Assembly (NCBI GenBank): GCA_033442325.1
Contig: JAWQFM010000009.1
Location: forward strand, 1,879,790 to 1,943,789
DNA: 64,000 bases
Origin: Salpingoeca rosetta
Taxonomy: Eukaryota > Protista > Choanoflagellata
Reading direction: 5' to 3'
The translations under genes and the position numbers were made by a program. Of this stretch, positions 29,521-61,117 are shown piece by piece (within the stretch, counting starts at the first letter, position 1; each line of letters starts with the position of its first letter). A model generated the notes under the pieces. The model was not told the origin of the DNA. It saw only the letters and a program-made list of their open reading frames with translations, and did not search any database.

Positions 29521-31572
29521 ATGAGCGTGTCCTTGGTGGCGTGGGTGCGCGGTGTCGTGCGGCAGACGCAGGCGCGCCTCAACGGGCTGCACTGGGCGCT
29601 GTTGATGGTGTACATCCTGAACGGGCTTGTGGAGGCCTTCCCACTGACCGCGTTTGAGTCGTGGCTGCAGAACGACATCCACGTGTCGCCCAGCGCACAG
29701 TCCACCTTCTACGCCACCATCTTCATTCCGTGGTCGCTCAAGCCGCTGTATGCGTGGATCTCGGAGTCGTTCCCCATCCACGGGCGCCGGCGAAAGCCGT
29801 ACATGGTCATCAGCGGCATCATCAGCGCGTGCACGTACCTGATGGTCGCCTTTGTCGTGCGTTCGCAAACCGGTGCGCTTGCCGTCACGCTCGCCCGCAC
29901 CGCCGCCAACGCCTGCACGGAGATCATCGCAGACTTGACCATGCTGGACTACGCGGGTCGAAACGGCGCCAACGTCGGCCACATCCAGAGCGCAGTTGCT
30001 GGCGTGCGAGCCGTCTCCTCCATCCTCGCGCTCCTCATTGGCATGCCGCTCTACCCGTGCACCCGCCACGGCGCCGCCACCGCCAGCACCAGAAACGTGC
30101 TGGCAGCGACTGCCGCGTTCCCGCTCGCCATAGTGCTGTGCGCCCTGTTTCTGCCAGAGCCGTCCCCAAAGCGAGACCGGCGACCCTCGTCGCCGCACAC
30201 GCCGCGCCGCACATCACCAGCACCTGCGCTGCCAGCACCCCTGGGCTCCCTCAACTCTGGGGAGGGCAAGCTGTGGTCGCCCCAGCCGGCCGTTGCAAGC
30301 ATTGGGCTGCAGGAAGAGGGGGAGGAAGAGAGGGAGGAGGAGGAGATCGACGGTGGGCAGGATGATCGAGTGCCGCTGTTGCATCGCCATCATCAGCGAC
30401 AGCTCCACGACCATCAGCTCCATCACGCTGGGCACACGACATCAACCCCGTCCACACCAACCGCGCCTACTGCCACGCATGCTCACACCCCGGCTGCCAC
30501 TGACCACGGCGGCGGCGGCCGGCGGTTCCCCATCTTCCAGCTGGCCATCCCGGGCGTGCTGCTCCTCCTCACGTGGAGCGCCCTGAAAGACATCATGTCC
30601 CATCGTCGCTGGCTCGACATGCTTGCCGGGGTGCTTGCCGTGGATGTTGTCATTGCCGCCGCCATTGTGTATGCCGCCATCACCCGCCCATCTGTGCGGC
30701 TCCTCAGCGGCATCAGCGGCGTGTGGCCCGCGCTCGTCCTGTTTGCCGTGTACGCAACACCAACCTCCTCCACCCAGATCACCTCCTGGTACTATGCGCA
30801 GTGGGCCGACCACCCCTGCTATCCACAGGCCATCAACATTGTTGCCTCGGGCAGCCGCCTTGTTGGCAGCGCCCTGTACTTCAAGCTGTTTGGCACCACG
30901 CGCGGCCGGCCGCTGCTGGTTACGCTGGTGGGCTCGCTCGTCGCCGCGGCCCTTGCCCAGCTCCTGTTTGTGCCCCTCGTGCAGGGCTCCATCCCTGCAC
31001 GCACGGCCCCGGAGCTCGCGTACGCGTGCGCGTGCACCCTCATCACGGGCACGGCCAGCCAGGTGGCCATGCTTGCGTTCCTGACTGTTGCCACGCGCGC
31101 ATGTCCGCACCCGACGCGCGCCGACGGCGGGCTCATCTACGCACTCGTGCTCTCGTTCCTGGACTTTGGCGACTCTGTGAGTGGGTGGATCACGGCGCCC
31201 ATCGCGCACGCGCTGAACATCACGCTCACAGACTACAGCCGGCTGCCCACGCTCATCTACATTGACAGCGGGACCTCTGTTGGGGTTGCGCCCGTGACGT
31301 TAGTGCTGGCGCTGAGCCCAGCCATCTATGCTGCTGCAACAACGCGAGGACAGGACGAGCGGGAGGGAGGGGAGCCGAGGGACGAGAGGGCGTTGCATGC
31401 GGGGATTGTTGCCCCTGGTAGCGATGGTGATGGTGGCAGCGACAGTGACAGTGGTAGTGGTGGTGGTGGTAGGTCGTGGGATGAAAGAGCCTTGATTGTG
31501 GATTGGGGACTTGGAGACGTGAGAAGAGATGACGAAGAAGCAGCAGAGGCAACAGCGAGAGGCAGGAGATAA
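29521..31572 (+). CDS. Folate-biopterin transporter (BT1/FBT family, MFS), intronless, 683 aa
   Basis: Signature IPWSLKPLYAWISESFPIHGRRRKPY, multiple hydrophobic helices in two halves around a long loop, and C-terminal YALVLSFLDFGDSVSGW...LNITLTDYSRL. Confidence 0.85.
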   Translation: MSVSLVAWVRGVVRQTQARLNGLHWALLMVYILNGLVEAFPLTAFESWLQNDIHVSPSAQSTFYATIFIPWSLKPLYAWISESFPIHGRRRKPYMVISGIISACTYLMVAFVVRSQTGALAVTLARTAANACTEIIADLTMLDYAGRNGANVGHIQSAVAGVRAVSSILALLIGMPLYPCTRHGAATASTRNVLAATAAFPLAIVLCALFLPEPSPKRDRRPSSPHTPRRTSPAPALPAPLGSLNSGEGKLWSPQPAVASIGLQEEGEEEREEEEIDGGQDDRVPLLHRHHQRQLHDHQLHHAGHTTSTPSTPTAPTATHAHTPAATDHGGGGRRFPIFQLAIPGVLLLLTWSALKDIMSHRRWLDMLAGVLAVDVVIAAAIVYAAITRPSVRLLSGISGVWPALVLFAVYATPTSSTQITSWYYAQWADHPCYPQAINIVASGSRLVGSALYFKLFGTTRGRPLLVTLVGSLVAAALAQLLFVPLVQGSIPARTAPELAYACACTLITGTASQVAMLAFLTVATRACPHPTRADGGLIYALVLSFLDFGDSVSGWITAPIAHALNITLTDYSRLPTLIYIDSGTSVGVAPVTLVLALSPAIYAAATTRGQDEREGGEPRDERALHAGIVAPGSDGDGGSDSDSGSGGGGRSWDERALIVDWGLGDVRRDDEEAAEATARGRR

Positions 31573-31952: not shown

Positions 31953-32453
31953 ATGAGCGGTGAAGCGAGGTTTGCGTCGCGGGCATGGGGCTCGGACGTG
32001 GCTGACCCAGGCAAAGAGGAGCTGGGGCACGCGTCCACCGCCTCTGACTTTGACGCTTTTGCTGAGTTTGTGCGCAATGACATGGTCGGCTCCGACTACC
32101 GCATCACCACGCCATATGGGGAGAGGAAACTCGTGTATGCGGACAGCACTGCTTCTGGCCGCAGCCTTCGCAGCATTGAGGACACGATCATGTCCCACGT
32201 TATGCCCCTCTACGGCAACACACACTCGGGCGCCTCGGCGTGTGGGCGCCAGACCACCCAGTTTGTTGAGGAGGCCAGGCAGCTCATCAAGAATTGCACC
32301 AACGCAACAGACGCAGGTGTGTGCATGTGTGCGCGTGCATGTGTGTGTGTCTGTGTGTGCGTCTGTGTGTGTAGCTGTATCTGTGTGCATCTACGTGTGC
32401 ATGTATGTGCATGTGTGTGTGTGCATGTATGTGCATGTGTGTCTGTGTTAGTT

Positions 32454-32527
<74 letters not shown>

Positions 32528-32891
32528 CACATCGTTTGCGTGTGCCAATGCAGATGCTGGCCATCAGCGTTCTTTGACGGCCCATCTTATCTTGCACTCG
32601 CACCTCTGCTGCTGCACGCTCAGATGTTCTCATCTTCGCTGGGACGGGGTGTACTGGCGCCGTTCACAAGCTGGCCTCCATTCTCGCCAAGACCATGGCT
32701 GAGCAACACAGCAGCAAGGATGGAGAGGCCCCAGCGTTCAAGTGCTCGTTCCCCGGCTGCTCTCGAGTATTCCGGGACCAGCAGTCCGTCCTGGTGCGCT
32801 GGTTGCTTGTGTCAGTGTGTGTGTGTGTGTGTGCATGTGTGTGCATGTGTGTGCGTGTGCGTGTGTGTGTGTGCATGTGTGTGCATGTGTG

Positions 32892-32974
<83 letters not shown>

Positions 32975-35854
32975 TCGCCCATGTCAGACTGCGCATAGTC
33001 TGGTCAACCTCCATCAACACGCCACCTTCATGCTTCAAGTTCATCGAGTTTCCCTCCCCCTCCGGCCGTGTGTTGTTCTCATGACCATACGCTCTTGCAG
33101 CTGCACAGCAGAACACATACGGATGGCGAAGCAAGTGGGTTTGCAGCAGAGACCGTCACGCCAGCGTCCGAGTCAACCGAGAGGCAAGAACAACGACCCC
33201 ATAGTGTGGACGCCGGTGATGACGTGCATGGCGTCGTGTTTGTTGGTCCGATGGAGCACCACTCAAACATCCTGCCCTGGACTGAGCTGCCACATGGTGC
33301 GTCATGTGTTGTGTGTGTAGGGGGGGGGTGTCATGCGACGTGTAATGTACCACCTGCTGATGACATGCACATTGTGTTTGCTGATGTACATACCCTCACA
33401 GAACACACACGCGCACACACGCGCGCGCACACGCAATATCACATTCACACACACACACACATTCACACACATACATTCCCACCCACACAACCACCATCAC
33501 CACCATCACCAGTGCGCGTGGTGCGCATCCGGGCGGGTGCTGATGGCCGGACGGACCAGGACGACCTCAGGTCCGCAATTGCCCGATTCGCGCACGTGCG
33601 CATGAAGGTGGGCTCCTTCTCTGCGGCGTCAAACGTGACTGGGATCATGGAGGATGTGGACGGCATCACTGTATTGCTGCACCAGCACGGCTGTCTTGCG
33701 TGCTGGGACTACGCTGCTGCTGGGCCCCACGTCCAAGGTGTGCGCAATACGTGTGAGGCCGCGTGTGTGATGCAGAAGGGAGCGAGAGTGGGAGGGAGAC
33801 ATCATCAGAACTGTACAGATGGACTTGATGATACATGCTGCCCATTCTGTGTGCATGCATGGATGCGTGCATGTGCATGGATGCGTTCATGTGCATGTAT
33901 GTATGCATGTGCATGTATGCGTGCATGTGCATGTCTGCGTGTGTATGTGTGTGCGTTGTTCCAAACAGGTTGCCTCTCGATCAGTCGTCGCACTGACGCC
34001 TGCCATCCCTCATTGTGCCCTCTCCCGCCCCCTGTTTGTTTTCACCCTTCCTTCTTTCATGTGTCCAGTGGACATGAACCCGAAAGTGCCTGGCCTTGCG
34101 CCGCACCTCATTGCCAAAGACGCGGTGTTCCTGTCGCCGCACAAGTTCCCCGGTGGCCCCTCAACCCCCGGCATCCTCATTGCCAAGCGCGACCTCATCG
34201 CCGCCTCCGCCCCGGCCGTTCCTGGCGGCGGCACCGTCTTCTACGTCTCCCGCACCAAACACAGGTTGGTGCGTGTGTAATGTGATGTGATGTGTGATGT
34301 GTGTTGTGTGTTGCGCTGCGTGTGTCTCTGGTGTGCGTTTGTTTGCTGGCATGTTTGTTTGTTTGTTTGTTTGTTTGTTTGTTTGTTCATTGCTCGTGAT
34401 GCTTCCCCACTCCCGCCCGCAACCCCCCCCCCACCATCAATCATCAACCCCGCCACCGCCACCATCATGTAGGTACCTCGAGTCGCCCGAGGAGCGGGAG
34501 GAGGGCGGGACCCCGAATATCATCGGTGCCGTCAGGGCAGGGCTCGTCTTCCAATACCAGGCCGCTGCTGCCACACCGCGCATTCGGGAGCGGGAGCAGG
34601 CCATTGCTCAGCGCGTGCAGTCTGCACTTGGATCCCATCCCCGCATCCACGTCCTCGGCCATCCACACGCACAACGCCTGCCCGTGAGTTGTCTGTTTTT
34701 GCACATGTATGTTGTTGTTGTGTGTGCGTGTGTGTGTGTGTGCGTGCGTGCGTACTTGTCTGTCTCGCACTCACTCCCTCACTCTCTCACTCACTTTCTC
34801 GCTCACTTTCTCACTCACTCACACACACACACACACACCCTTCCTTCTGTCTTATTGAAATACCGTGCGCTCACTTCGCTGACCACGCCATCATCCGTGC
34901 GTGTGGTGTTGCAACTCCAGGTGTTTTCGTTCATGATCCGCTATCCGCAGTCCCCCAAATTCCTGCATTGGTCTTTCGTCACAGTCCTCCTCAACGACTT
35001 GTTCGGCATTCAGTGCCGGGGCGGGTGCGTTCGCATTGGTGTCTGTGCGTGCGCTGCTGACCATGTTCGTTCGTACATGCCCTGTGTTTGCACGCCTTCT
35101 CCTGCATGTCTCTGTGTCCGCACACAAACACACACTCTCTCTGTCACACATGTTCCTTGCGGGTCTGACTTATCCCACCACTGCCACTGGCACCACCCTG
35201 CTGCCGCTGCCACCGCAGGTGCCTGTGCGCGGGTCCATATGGCCACGACCTGCTTCACATCAGCGAGAACGATGCCGAGGCGATTGAGTCGGCCCTCATC
35301 GCCAAACGCGAGATCCTTCGCCCGGGGTTTGTCCGCGTCTCCGTCCCGTATTACTGGACCGATGCGCAGACGGATGGGCTCATATCTGCCATCCGCTTCG
35401 TTGCGGACCACGGCCACCTCTTCCTGCAGGACTACACATTCTACGTCGACTCGGGTGCGCCTTCAACACCGCAGTGCATGTGGCTGCACGCTTTGTTGTT
35501 GTTGTTGTTGTTGTATTAAGTTGTTGTTGTTGTTGTTTAAGTTGTTGTTGTTTAAGTTGTTGTTGTTTAAGTTGTTGTTTAAGTTGTTGTTGTTGTTGTT
35601 GTTTAAGTTGTTGTTGTTGTTGTTGTTTAAGTTGTTGTTGTTGTTGTTGTTGTTTAAGTTATTGTTTAGTTGTTGTTGTTGTTGTTGTTGTTGTTTAAGT
35701 TGTTGTTGTTGTTGTTGTTGTTTAAGTTGTTGTTGTTGTTTAAGTTGTTGTTTAAGTTGTTGTTGCTGTTGTTGTTGTTTAAGTTGTTGTTGTTTAAGTT
35801 GTTGTTGTTGTTGCTGTTGTTGTTGTTTAAGTTTTGTTGTTGTTGTTGTTTAAG

Positions 35855-35915
<61 letters not shown>

Positions 35916-35929
35916 AGTTGTTGTTTAAG

Positions 35930-35984
<55 letters not shown>

Positions 35985-36007
35985 AGTTGTTGTTGTTGTT
36001 GTTTAAG

Positions 36008-36042
<35 letters not shown>

Positions 36043-37327
36043 GGCATGGACAAGTGTGCTGTTCTGTGACACATCTACACGAATGTCAATTGGTTTCCGT
36101 TCCGTGTCATTGCTGCGAGCAAGCTACTGTGCTCCTGTTCCATTTCTCCTACCAGCCCTCATTGCTCATCTGTGCCTGCATACATACCGCGTGCGTGTGT
36201 AGGCGAGTATCGCCACAAGTCGCTGCGCAAGACGTCGCCGCACCGGCTCTGGCTGCACGACCTCTCCTTCACCACGGGCAGCAAGGTCGAGGTGGGCTCC
36301 CTCAAGCGGAACACAGACAGGATGGCACAGCGGTTGCCCCACACCAAGGTGTGTGCGTGTGCCTCGAGGGGGGCAATGAGTTGTCGAGTCTGATCGTGGT
36401 CGTTGCTGTAGCTGCAGTTGTGGGCGCGGCTGTGGCTGTGGTCGTGGCTGTGGCTGTGCCTGCGTTTGGAGCTGGTCAATATTCATGCGTGTCCTCATCA
36501 CCATTCTCTGCCTGCGCAGTCGCTGCAAGAGCTCGTCGATGATGCGGCGCAACTCTGCAAAGGAAGGAAGCAGCCCATCACGGTGAGCACGACCGAGAAT
36601 CGAGGTGGCTCTTGCATGTGGTACATACTTGAACATCGTGTCGGCTTGTCACTGACGTTCATGTGCCGGCAAGCGCACGGACGCGCAAGAATTCGCTCAC
36701 ACATTCACACACGGTCACACACATTCACACACGGTCACACACATGCACGCACATGCATGCACATGCACGCACATTCACACAGCCGGATCTTGACCCAGAC
36801 ATGGTGGTTGGCCTGGGACCCGAGCAGTCACACCTCCGCTGGTTTGCCTGCGAAGGAGAGGAGCAGAGCGCTGTAAACAGCAGTGGCGATGAGGATGATG
36901 GAGATGATGGAGATGATGGAACGATTCATCTCTTGGGGAAGAGAGTCGGGGATACAGCAGCAGACGTGTGCCCGCTGGTCTCCTTCGCGCGCAACGCAGC
37001 AGCATCAGCAGGGGAGGAGTCGACGGCCCGTGATGATGGCGCTGATGGTGCTGGCGATCGTGTCCACACTGACAACGGCACTGCGTCGAAGGAGGCAGCG
37101 GAAGACCACAGGAACCCAAGCAGTGCGCCACCAGCACCTACACCACCAGCAGATGGCAAGAAGGCCAAAGGCACGGATATGACATTGACCCACGATGACG
37201 GCCACGAGAGATCGGAGGATGAACCAAAGACGAAGCGCAGCAAACTCGCCCGCCCCGACCCAAAACTCTGGCCAAAAGTCCCAAAGAGCCTCCTCAGGCC
37301 CATTGGTACGTGAAGCGATGTGCTGCG

Positions 37328-37404
<77 letters not shown>

Positions 37405-38688
37405 CGTGCGTGTGTGCCGTGTGCCGTGTGCTTGCGTATCAGTGTGCTTTTGTTAGACCCAGCTTGTTCCCACTCTCCCACTCTCCCCTCGTCTCTCCTC
37501 CCTGCTTCATCTTCGTCAGGCGAGGCCATCCGCCAGTTCTCGATGATCACCGACGGCGATCGCGTCCTGATCGGACTCTCTGGAGGGAAAGACTCCCTGA
37601 CGCTGCTCCATTGCCTGCATGCACTCCAGCGCCGCGCCCCCATCTCCTTCAAGCTCGCCGCCGTCACCATGAACCCAAACTTCCCTGGCTTTGACCCGGC
37701 CCCGCTCAAGGCGTACCTGGCGAAGCTTGGCGTCGAGTACTTCTTTGAGACGCAGGACCTGCTGCAGCTCGCCAAGGACACCAAGCCGTCCTCCATCTGC
37801 TCCTGGTGCTCCCGTATGAAACGTGAGTCACGCCCGCTGTGTGTGTGTGTGTGTGTCTAGGACCGCGGTCGTTTGAACCCATAGCTGCGTCCTGCTTCCT
37901 CGCTCCGCTTCGTCAAAGTTGTCTTGCTCGTTACTAAATGACGTGGTCTCGTGTTGTTGAACACAGGCGGGATTCTGTACACTGTGGCGCGACGCGAGGG
38001 GTACAACGTGCTTGCACTTGGGCAGCACCTTGACGACCTTGCAGAGAGTTTCATCATGACTGCGTTTCACAACGGCAAGCTACGCACAATGAACGCGCAC
38101 TACTTGAACGACAAGGGGGATTTGCGGATCATTCGTCCGCTTGCATTTGTGCGCGAGCGCCAAACGCGCGCATTTGCTGTTGCCAATGGCCTGCCGGTGA
38201 TTCAGGAGAACTGCCCAGCGTGCTTTGAGGAACCACAGGAACGATACCGCATCAAGACCATGCTCGCACAACAGGTGTTGTGTATATCTGTGTATCTGTG
38301 TGTGTGTGTCTGTGTGTGTGTGTCTGTTTATGTGAGAGTGTATATGTGTGTGTGTGAGGGTATATGTGTATCTGTATGTGCGTGCGCACGTTCATATGTG
38401 TTTATGTGTGTTTGTGCTCTAGTTATGGTGCACCGTTTGTGTTGTTGTTCTGCCGTGTGCTTCCAAGTGGTTTCCCCTGGTACACCTCAAGCCCCAACCT
38501 CACCCAAACACAAACACCCCCCCCCCCCTCCTTTCTCGACTCACCACCACCAGGAACACCTGTTCCCGAACCTGCTCTCCAACATGCGCAAAGCGCTGCT
38601 GCCGCTGATGCGTGAAGGGTACGACGCTGCCATGACGGCGGTTGCATCCGGGGCCAGCACAGGTGGTGATGGCGCATCAACGGAGTGA
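31953..38688 (+). CDS. Fusion protein: class-V PLP cysteine-desulfurase-like domain (with inserted C2H2 finger) + TtcA-like PP-loop tRNA thiolase
   Basis: VYADSTASG, YGNTHS, EHHSNILPW, SAASNVTG, WDYAAAGP, SPHKF (PLP Lys), REEGGTPNI, QCRGG|CLCAGPYG (putative persulfide Cys). After an acidic linker come GLSGGKDS, ICSWCSRMKR|GILY, LGQHLDDLAE, IIRPL and NCPAC. The frame is continuous across GT-AG joins. Confidence 0.88.
35493..36042. repeat. Compound (TTG)n/TTTAAG satellite, ~550 bp, intronic
   Basis: TTG runs of variable length punctuated by TAAG; the source of the poly-L/C/N ORFs. Confidence 0.95.
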
Positions 38689-38742
38689 ATGAGATCAAGC
38701 AAGTGGTTGTGTGTGTGTGTGTGTGCGTGTGTGTGTGTGTGT

Positions 38743-38980: not shown

Positions 38981-40457
38981 TCACGAGAGGGCGATGAGGC
39001 GGTTGGAGTTCTCGACGAGTTCTTCGATGGCAACACGGCCGCGCTGCTTCAAAAACTTGGCCACCCCCTCCAGCTCCTGCCAATGCGGTGTTGGGGCAAT
39101 GTGCGGTGTGAACATTGTGCTGTTGGGCGGCGGGGAGGAGGACACGGGTGCAGGGGTGTGCAGGATCCCGAGATTGCATGTGCGCACGAGGGCGCACGAA
39201 AACGCACACAAACTCGCTCACTGACGAACTAACTAACAAACAAACAAAGAAACAAACGAGCGAGGGAACGAACGAGCGAGCGAACGAACGAACGAACGAA
39301 CGAACGAACGAACGAACAGACACACACACACACACAGACGCACACACACACACACACACAGACAGACGCACACACACACACACGACGCACCTCCTTTGAG
39401 ACGTAGATGTACTTTCCCCTGTCGTCTGTGACGCCCGTGAGCCAGCCCATGCTCTCAAGCGCATTGACGCGGTTGATTGCCTCCTGTGTGCGCAGGTCAA
39501 AGTGCGTGGCCAGGTCCTCCAGCGACACGACCTTCTTCTCCTTGATGAAGTTGACAAAGTCCGTGAGCAGACTCTGTGACTCGTCCTGGATCTCCGTTGC
39601 CTGCGATCCCTCTGTCTCCATCACAAACATGCCCTTGATGGCCTCGTATTCCTCTTGCTCCTTCCTCTTCTGCTCCTCCAGTTGCTGTTGTTCTTCGGCC
39701 TTTCTCTCCTCCTCCTCCCTCGTCTCGGCCTCCCTCATATCCGCTGCCGCCTTTTCCTCTTCCTCTCGTCGTCGCCGCTCCTCCTCTTGCCGCCGCCGCG
39801 CAGCCTGGACGCGTGCGTGCATGTGTACGTGTGTGCATGTGTACGTGTGTGCGTGTGCGTGTGTGCGTGTGCGTGTGGATGCGCGTGTGCATGTGTACGT
39901 GTGTGTGTGTGTGTTTGTGTGTGCGTTTGCGTGTGTGTATGTGTGTGTGTGTGCGCGCGGGTGTGATACATGGGCGGTGAGACATGGGCACGATGTATGC
40001 CGTGTGCTGCATGTGCAGAGGGCGCGTGTTGCTGCAGGTGACCACGCTTGGCAGCACGCATCGCGTGGATGAATGGCTTCACCTCTGTCGCGAGGCGGCG
40101 CTGGCGCTTTTCCTGCATCTTCTTCCACTTCTTCAAGCCAATGTGTGGGGGCCGTTGGCCTGCAATACCAGTACATGCAGGCACAGCATGGCGTTGAGAG
40201 GATGCACACAGACAAGCGCAGAGCAGGAAGGAGAGAGAGAGACAGAGAGAGGGGGGGAGAGAGGGAGACACAGACACAGACAGAGAGAGGCAGGGAGGGA
40301 GACGGAGAGAGACAGAAACAGAAAGCCCCGAGTGTTTCGACCGCAAGGCACACACACNNNNNNNNNNNNNNNNNNNNNNNNNNNNNNNNNNNNNNNNNNN
40401 NNNNNNNNNNNNNNNNNNNNNNNNNNNNNNNNNNNNNNNNNNNNNNNNNNNNNNNNN

Positions 40458-52318: not shown

Positions 52319-52418
52319 NNNNNNNNNNNNNNNNNNNNNNNNNNNNNNNNNNNNNNNNNNNNNNNNNNNNNNNNNNNNNNNNNNNNNNNNNNNNNNNNNN
52401 NNNNNNNNNNNNNNNNNN
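52319..52418. other. Assembly gap (100 N)
   Basis: N run. Confidence 1.
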
Positions 52419-61017: not shown

Positions 61018-61117
61018 NNNNNNNNNNNNNNNNNNNNNNNNNNNNNNNNNNNNNNNNNNNNNNNNNNNNNNNNNNNNNNNNNNNNNNNNNNNNNNNNNNN
61101 NNNNNNNNNNNNNNNNN
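61018..61117. other. Assembly gap (100 N)
   Basis: N run; it probably hides the GDxHG and GDxVDRG exons of the phosphatase. Confidence 1.

Follow-up and report, generated by a model that had tools for sequence, protein, structure and literature searches.

Gene structure at the S. rosetta locus

The region analysed is a 64,000-nucleotide stretch of the genome of the choanoflagellate Salpingoeca rosetta (contig JAWQFM010000009.1, positions 1,879,790 to 1,943,789; hereafter the window), in which an initial annotation, made by reading the letters without database searches, had placed a gene for a cysteine desulfurase fused to a TtcA-type tRNA thiolase. Using a script that traced the annotated S. 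rosetta protein P0152 (1059 amino acids (aa); NCBI name "PP-loop domain-containing protein [Salpingoeca rosetta]") along the window while allowing GT/GC...AG introns, we obtained a chain of 14 exons and 13 canonical GT-AG introns on the + strand, the 1059-aa spliced translation of which is identical to P0152 residue for residue. The coding sequence runs from 31953 to 38688, exactly the limits originally assigned to it, and several of its exons matched P0152 at 100% in tblastn, so that both the gene structure and the identity of the annotated protein are directly supported. No second S. rosetta copy of the fusion was found among the best 120 matches of a full-length protein search.

Five motifs that had been read from the sequence as lying in one spliced frame were all recovered in this chain. 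In the desulfurase part these are SPHK (residues 341–344; 34134–34145) and RGGCLCAGPY (residues 487–496; 35017–35240, interrupted by intron 7), and in the TtcA part SGGKDS (residues 832–837; 37579–37596), CSWC (residues 905–908; 37798–37809) and CPAC (residues 995–998; 38212–38223). Such a set in a single spliced frame is far beyond chance. Pfam recognised two families in this one open reading frame (ORF), in the order proposed: Aminotran_5 (PF00266), with profile positions 1–60, 114–184 and 242–312 matched in exons 1, 4 and 6, and ATP_bind_3 (PF01171), with profile positions 2–35 and 88–165 matched in exons 12 and 13.

The desulfurase domain begins in exon 1 (31953–32316, aa 1–122), which carries the start codon and a disordered N-terminus, and extends through exon 2 (32624–32793, aa 122–178; a helix and the first half of an inserted C2H2 zinc finger, with C162 and C167), exon 3 (33101–33296, aa 179–244; the second half of the finger with H180 and H184, a low-confidence loop and the H231-H232 pair), exon 4 (33513–33737, aa 244–319; desulfurase core, including D309) and exon 5 (34069–34264, aa 319–384; S-P-H-K with the pyridoxal phosphate (PLP) lysine K344). 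The small domain starts in exon 6 (34473–34683, aa 384–454); exon 7 (34921–35024, aa 455–489) ends within the R-G-G of the catalytic-loop motif, and exon 8 (35219–35454, aa 489–568) supplies C490-L-C492 and R528. After intron 8 (35455–36202), exon 9 (36203–36348, aa 568–616; R582, W584) and exon 10 (36520–36582, aa 617–637; a helix) encode a conserved C-terminal extension of the desulfurase module. Exon 11 (36783–37305, aa 638–812) contains L-R-W-F (655–658), a disordered acidic linker (672–796) and the first helix of the TtcA domain (from ~797). The remainder of that domain is divided over exon 12 (37520–37822, aa 812–913; PP-loop SGGKDS and C905-S-W-C908), exon 13 (37967–38274, aa 913–1015; TtcA core and C995-P-A-C998) and exon 14 (38554–38688, aa 1016–1059 and the stop codon; C-terminal helices).

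The fusion was correctly recognised in the initial annotation, and it was already known: the S. rosetta gene is annotated, the fusion occurs in many eukaryotes, and a September 2026 bioRxiv preprint (10.64898/2026.09.27.754811) describes the same gene family while reporting 2-thiocytidine at position 32 (s2C32) in tRNA-Lys(UUU) of the mollusc Aplysia as the first eukaryotic s2C32. The idea of an unrecognised eukaryotic thio-modification was thus overtaken by that report. Several database relatives already bear the names "tRNA 2-thiocytidine biosynthesis protein TtcA" or "tRNA-cytidine(32) 2-sulfurtransferase". Our literature searches returned no treatment of the fusion besides the preprint, and those combining TtcA with protist names returned no paper mentioning TtcA.

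Evidence that the two halves form one protein

Exon 11 is a single open frame that spans both modules with no internal splice. Because it holds the last motif of the desulfurase module, the linker and the start of the TtcA domain, it bridges the two halves independently of any splice. In eight S. rosetta runs (X4–X11), 0.44–0.51 of the sampled words of 33000–38700 were present, and the exon fraction of that interval is 0.46; this fits spliced RNA and is no proof of continuity. A protein search over the domain junction with P0152 residues 560–860 found no near-identical S. rosetta transcript fragments. In close relatives, the complete fusion was encoded by "type:complete" ORFs that each lie on one de novo transcriptome contig (P0010, P0151, P0153–P0156), and the preprint reports even RNA-seq coverage across the Aplysia orthologue (10.64898/2026.09.27.754811). 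Uninterrupted fused ORFs of 871 and 997 codons were also located on two long metagenome contigs (L007, 7156–9771, and L008, 8001–10994). A prokaryotic origin of these two ORFs was considered and rejected, since the neighbouring genes are eukaryotic, encoding PB1/ZZ, protein kinase and Rtf2-cyclophilin domains.

These data also bear on whether the two domains might work as separate proteins, arising from a promoter or ATG inside the gene, within exon 11 or upstream of it, or from cleavage of the linker, with the fusion merely serving co-regulation. The 125-aa linker shows disorder and little conservation, exon 11 contains in-frame ATGs (M644 and M770), and possible cleavage is brought up in the Aplysia preprint (10.64898/2026.09.27.754811). 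The frame is nevertheless unbroken through exon 11, and the fused order has been kept in many eukaryotic lineages, both in single-contig transcript ORFs and in intronless genomic ORFs. Such long-term retention suggests that the physical linkage itself matters, and we regard separately acting domains as improbable.

A SufS-type desulfurase module

The protein was modelled with AlphaFold from an alignment of 38 fused proteins; the model (mean predicted local distance difference test (pLDDT) score 76, predicted template modelling score 0.61) contained confident structure at residues ~28–670 and 797–1047, with residues 672–796 disordered at pLDDT <50. Means of pLDDT over 10-residue blocks across 28–640 were mostly 72–97, with low-confidence loops at 202–217, 364–378 and 384–396. 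When the model was compared with the PDB using Foldseek, the best 50 matches were all SufS, Nfs2 or CsdB, with target template modelling (TM) scores of 0.74–0.83.

Among NCBIfam hidden Markov models (HMMs), the N-terminal domain scored highest against the SufS family (137 bits), followed by SufS, encapsulin cargo desulfurase and CsdA. The IscS and NifS models reached 19.5 and 41.8 bits and covered only the N-terminal 70–90 residues, and a class I (IscS/NifS-type) reading of the domain was rejected on these scores. The original identification of a PLP-dependent desulfurase stands, the domain being SufS/CsdA-like rather than IscS-like. At the same time, the SufS and CsdA models were matched far below their cut-offs, with 137 versus 475 bits for the SufS family and 92 versus 661 for SufS (TIGR01979 / NF006791), and 68 versus 607 for CsdA (NF008126). 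Because of these low scores, the module is, as judged from sequence, a separate subfamily rather than an orthologue of SufS or CsdA. Both bacteria and eukaryotes also have relatives of the N-terminal module that stand alone.

The catalytic residues were mapped with phmmer against PDB sequences and with BLASTP against E. coli SufS, and the two maps were mutually consistent. They pair H231/H232 with SufS H123/H124, D309 with D200, the PLP lysine K344 with K226, R487 with R359, C492 with the catalytic C364, and R528 with R379. All of these residues, together with C490, are invariant in the alignment of the 38 fused proteins, which come from distant eukaryotes, and the consensus of the catalytic loop in these proteins is R-[GS]-G-C-x-C-A-G-P. 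With SufS, CsdA and plastid Nfs2 the S. rosetta module shares the fold (target TM ~0.8), the PLP lysine, the histidine pair, the aspartate, the position of the catalytic cysteine and both substrate arginines. It differs from them in its catalytic loop, which reads G-C-x-C-A-G-P instead of G-H-H-C-A, and in its C-terminal extension. By predicted fold and catalytic set, the N-terminal module is a class II cysteine desulfurase. In the Aplysia preprint (10.64898/2026.09.27.754811), the corresponding domain is termed IscS-like and its catalytic cysteine is not identified; the SufS-type assignment and the alignment of C492 with SufS C364 correct both points.

The conserved extension that follows the desulfurase core measures ~150 aa and is absent from SufS, CsdA and Nfs2. 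Its exon 9 portion was modelled with pLDDT ~75–80, and it includes a near-invariant L-R-W-F-x-x-P-S-E-A motif (36834–36863, aa 655–664) at the place where the Aplysia preprint sees an unconserved linker. As this motif is conserved, the folded N-terminal module probably reaches to about residue 670. Class II desulfurases normally depend on a SufE, SufU or CsdE acceptor. Within residues 497–800 we detected no Pfam family, and so no acceptor domain of the SufE/SufU/CsdE type.

It could be argued from these features that the PLP domain is not the working desulfurase of TtcA at all, and is instead another PLP lyase, a sensor or a scaffold, with sulfur coming from mitochondrial Nfs1. The wide gap between the scores of the domain and the family cut-offs for SufS and CsdA (137 versus 475 bits), the replacement of the H-H of the catalytic loop by C-x and the undetectable acceptor domain would all agree with this. 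We nonetheless consider it very unlikely indeed, as the whole class II catalytic set is invariant over 38 distant homologues, the fold matches SufS structures, and recurrent additional fusions to thioredoxin-fold domains (P0174, P0337 and P0347; see below) fit thiol or persulfide chemistry.

The C2H2 finger that interrupts a surface loop of the desulfurase has the spacing C162-x4-C167-x12-H180-x3-H184 and is encoded at 32743–33118 in exons 2 and 3, divided by intron 2. Residues 153–186 matched fingers of ZIC3 and PRDM9 in a PDB sequence search, and the finger block had pLDDT means of ~72–89. Within the 38-sequence alignment, only the choanoflagellate group and "UC4" have this finger; the 12 named animal members, the oomycetes and the heteroloboseans all lack it, and Blepharisma has a differently placed one. 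Possible roles of the finger are tRNA binding or a structural zinc site.

The TtcA-type module

The C-terminal domain scored 235 bits against the NCBIfam TtcA model NF007972 (profile positions 19–249 of 295), and 64, 53 and 39 bits against TilS_N, TtuA and NcsA, respectively. Readings of this domain as Ncs6/Ctu1, TtuA or TilS were rejected on these scores (39–64 versus 235 bits). Grouping with Ncs6 or TilS had been named at the outset as an outcome that would speak against a TtcA-type domain, and the domain instead sided with TtcA. TtuA and Ncs6 carry zinc-finger CxxC pairs at both the N- and the C-terminus. Neither such terminal pairs nor a TilS C-terminal domain were seen on reading the S. 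rosetta sequence directly. The [4Fe-4S] tRNA thiolases for U54 and U34 (TtuA, NcsA and Ncs6-Ctu1) share with the S. rosetta domain the PP-loop fold and a three-cysteine cluster site. They also provide the closest solved structures by sequence: a sequence search yielded no solved TtcA structure, the nearest chains being TtuA, NcsA and TilS.

E. coli TtcA shares with the S. rosetta domain the SGGKDS motif, a similar domain length and the cysteines C122, C125 and C222. SGGKDS is the PP-loop motif named for E. coli TtcA (PMC4081106), with which residues 832–837 align. In the alignment, C905/C908 correspond to E. coli C122/C125 and C995/C998 to C219/C222. C122, C125 and C222 of the E. coli enzyme are essential and have been proposed to ligate a [4Fe-4S] cluster, the fourth iron of which bears the sulfur for transfer (Bouvier et al., PMC4081106); C219 is non-essential. 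All four S. rosetta cysteines are invariant in alignments of 12 and 38 sequences. The domain class and the conservation of catalytic residues are hence directly supported, and by these sequence criteria the domain is clearly TtcA-type.

The match to TtcA is not complete, however. The score of 235 bits lies 37 bits below the equivalog cut-off of NF007972 (272 bits), a model that is bacterial, and identity to E. coli TtcA is 35%. The S. rosetta domain is nearer to bacterial "TtcA family" proteins of Halothiobacillus and Thioalbus, to which it is 55–56% identical, and with such uncharacterised proteins it belongs to a "CPAC" subgroup. These observations leave room for a TtcA-like domain that thiolates another position or another RNA, or that makes 2-thiouridine; alternatively, the PLP domain could mobilise selenium, as SufS/CsdB-type enzymes are also selenocysteine lyases according to PDB titles. 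We judge such other substrates unlikely, given that TtcA is the best family by ~170 bits, that the terminal CxxC pairs of TtuA and Ncs6 were not seen, and that s2C32 is present in an animal with an orthologue (10.64898/2026.09.27.754811).

In a quick maximum-likelihood tree of 38 fused domains and 54 bacterial TtcA-family proteins (including E. coli TtcA), with E. coli TilS as the outgroup, the fused TtcA domains made up one side of a branch with a Shimodaira–Hasegawa-like approximate likelihood ratio test (SH-aLRT) support of 92. The bacterial sample in this tree was drawn with one query and is biased accordingly; the distinction from Ncs6 and TtuA comes from the HMM scores. Choanoflagellates, animals, oomycetes and heteroloboseans each clustered together within the fused group, and E. 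coli TtcA sat on a long branch. A bacterial operon as the precursor of the fusion was looked for and rejected: the closest named bacterial TtcA-family gene, that of Thioalbus denitrificans, has no Aminotran_5 neighbour and instead lies beside a divergent rhodanese-domain gene (L004, 5420–5848). With such a neighbour, these bacteria may draw their sulfur from another donor.

Distribution and origin of the fusion

The expectation that similar fusions would exist in other eukaryote annotations was borne out. A search of 1.8 billion representative proteins with the PP-loop exon returned many proteins of ~900–1300 aa with the match near the C-terminus, and all eight long homologues that were scanned contained Aminotran_5 followed by ATP_bind_3. 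The distribution was then taken from the best 120 matches in each of two full-length searches, the second of which had 5760 proteins past an E-value of 1e-50. Both domains were present in all of these matches except one partial entry with a plant label (P0324, Turnera subulata, 1611 aa), in which only Aminotran_5 was found. This entry was the sole land-plant-labelled match among the close relatives listed and may reflect contamination or a wrongly joined gene model.

Among the matches listed, animals and their relatives were represented by choanoflagellates, sponges (Corticium, Oscarella and Sycon), a coral, molluscs, a brachiopod, echinoderms, hemichordates, amphioxus, chelicerates, mayflies and a copepod. 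Other eukaryotes with the fusion were oomycetes, the ciliate Blepharisma, the cryptophyte Guillardia, Plasmodiophora and the heteroloboseans Naegleria, Willaertia, Acrasis and Percolomonas. These matches, which were not a dedicated test of absence, included no vertebrates or fungi and no clear land-plant sequence. The fusion is thus directly seen to be spread over eukaryotic supergroups and, going by the tree, appears to have a single origin. The S. rosetta gene is an ordinary, already annotated member of this family.

Three metagenome proteins (P0174, P0337 and P0347) are three-part fusions in which a thioredoxin, redoxin or AhpC-TSA-type domain is added to the desulfurase and TtcA domains. 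Such a composition is a hint that the catalytic cycle includes a disulfide reduction.

The mollusc members offer the closest comparison with the preprint. Aplysia californica "IscS-TtcA" (LOC101861551) and the other mollusc proteins have the same order of a CsdA-like PLP domain, a variable linker and a TtcA-like domain, and share with S. rosetta the PLP lysine, the C-x-C pair, SGGKDS and the C...CSxC...CPAC cysteine pattern. Those of Haliotis, Littorina and Gigantopelta are 42–43% identical to the S. rosetta protein and fall in the same tree group. The linker is ~125 aa in S. rosetta versus 405 aa in the Aplysia fusion, and the S. rosetta desulfurase has the C2H2 finger that the 12 named animal members lack.

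Proposed function and mechanism

Taken together, the data favour, with a probability of roughly 0.7, one 14-exon gene encoding a 1059-aa bifunctional enzyme in which a desulfurase (28–670), joined by the disordered acidic linker (672–796) to a TtcA-type PP-loop ATPase (797–1047), would serve to form s2C32. E. coli TtcA uses a separate IscS, whereas the S. rosetta domain is fused to a desulfurase of its own.

In the cycle that we infer, L-cysteine would bind to K344-PLP and C492 would accept its sulfur as a persulfide. The neighbouring C490 may then relay the persulfide, or resolve it so that sulfide is released and a disulfide forms, a chemistry that the thioredoxin-fused variants would fit. 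The TtcA domain would receive the sulfur, in cis or inside a dimer, on the free iron of a [4Fe-4S] cluster, presumably held by three of C905, C908, C995 and C998 and loaded by the cellular Fe-S machinery. The PP-loop would adenylate C32 of a subset of tRNAs, after which the cluster-bound sulfide could displace AMP to give 2-thiocytidine. The initial description of the enzyme as self-contained would accordingly apply to its sulfur supply; by analogy with E. coli TtcA (PMC4081106), cellular Fe-S machinery, ATP and a reductant would still be needed from elsewhere.

We propose s2C32 as the product because of the family assignment and because s2C32 has been reported in Aplysia tRNA-Lys(UUU). The same Aplysia tRNA also bears 5-methoxycarbonylmethyl-2-thiouridine (mcm5s2U), a modification of cytosolic type (10.64898/2026.09.27.754811), which may point to a cytosolic enzyme. 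The first 27 residues of the S. rosetta protein are disordered in the AlphaFold model.

Several points weigh against this bifunctional enzyme. The TtcA score stays under the equivalog cut-off and identity to the E. coli enzyme is low; no acceptor domain was detected between the modules; the linker could be cleaved post-translationally; a single mRNA in S. rosetta is argued from the annotated model, the bridging exon and the relatives; and the link between the Aplysia gene and s2C32 is one of co-occurrence.

A more far-reaching and rather doubtful scenario would have the fusion arise in an early eukaryote, making s2C32 an ancestral modification that was lost in yeasts, land plants and vertebrates. 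Under it, the desulfurase would be an acceptor-independent class II enzyme with a self-resolving persulfide at Cys490-x-Cys492, delivering sulfide straight to the iron of the TtcA cluster and being reset by a thioredoxin-type reductant.

Beyond the preprint, the present analysis adds a SufS-type desulfurase whose catalytic cysteine can be identified within a C-x-C loop, a fusion that extends across eukaryotic supergroups with apparently one origin, and recurrent third domains of thioredoxin fold. Also added are the bridging-exon argument, the conserved motif of the extension and the choanoflagellate-restricted zinc finger. If the bifunctional enzyme works as proposed, many eukaryotes, including the closest unicellular relatives of animals, sponges, molluscs, echinoderms and amphioxus, would make s2C32 with a dedicated enzyme supplying its own sulfur, and s2C32 would belong to a domain of life from which the 2026 preprint was the first to report it. 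S. rosetta, being cultured and unicellular, may be handier than Aplysia in tests of whether the gene accounts for the modification.

Other features of the window

No tRNA genes were found by ARAGORN in the whole 64-kb window. Three 100-N assembly gaps (40358–40457, 52319–52418 and 61018–61117) all lie outside the fusion gene. The upstream neighbour (29521–31572, + strand) is a single-exon ORF of 683 aa that belongs to the BT1 (folate/biopterin transporter) family and has long low-complexity inserts.

The introns of the fusion gene are rich in TG-type repeats. Most of intron 8, which sits between the desulfurase core and its C-terminal extension, is occupied by a 551-bp TTG-rich microsatellite (35493–36043) with interspersed TTTAAG units, in which GC content falls to 0.29 and GC skew rises to 0.97.

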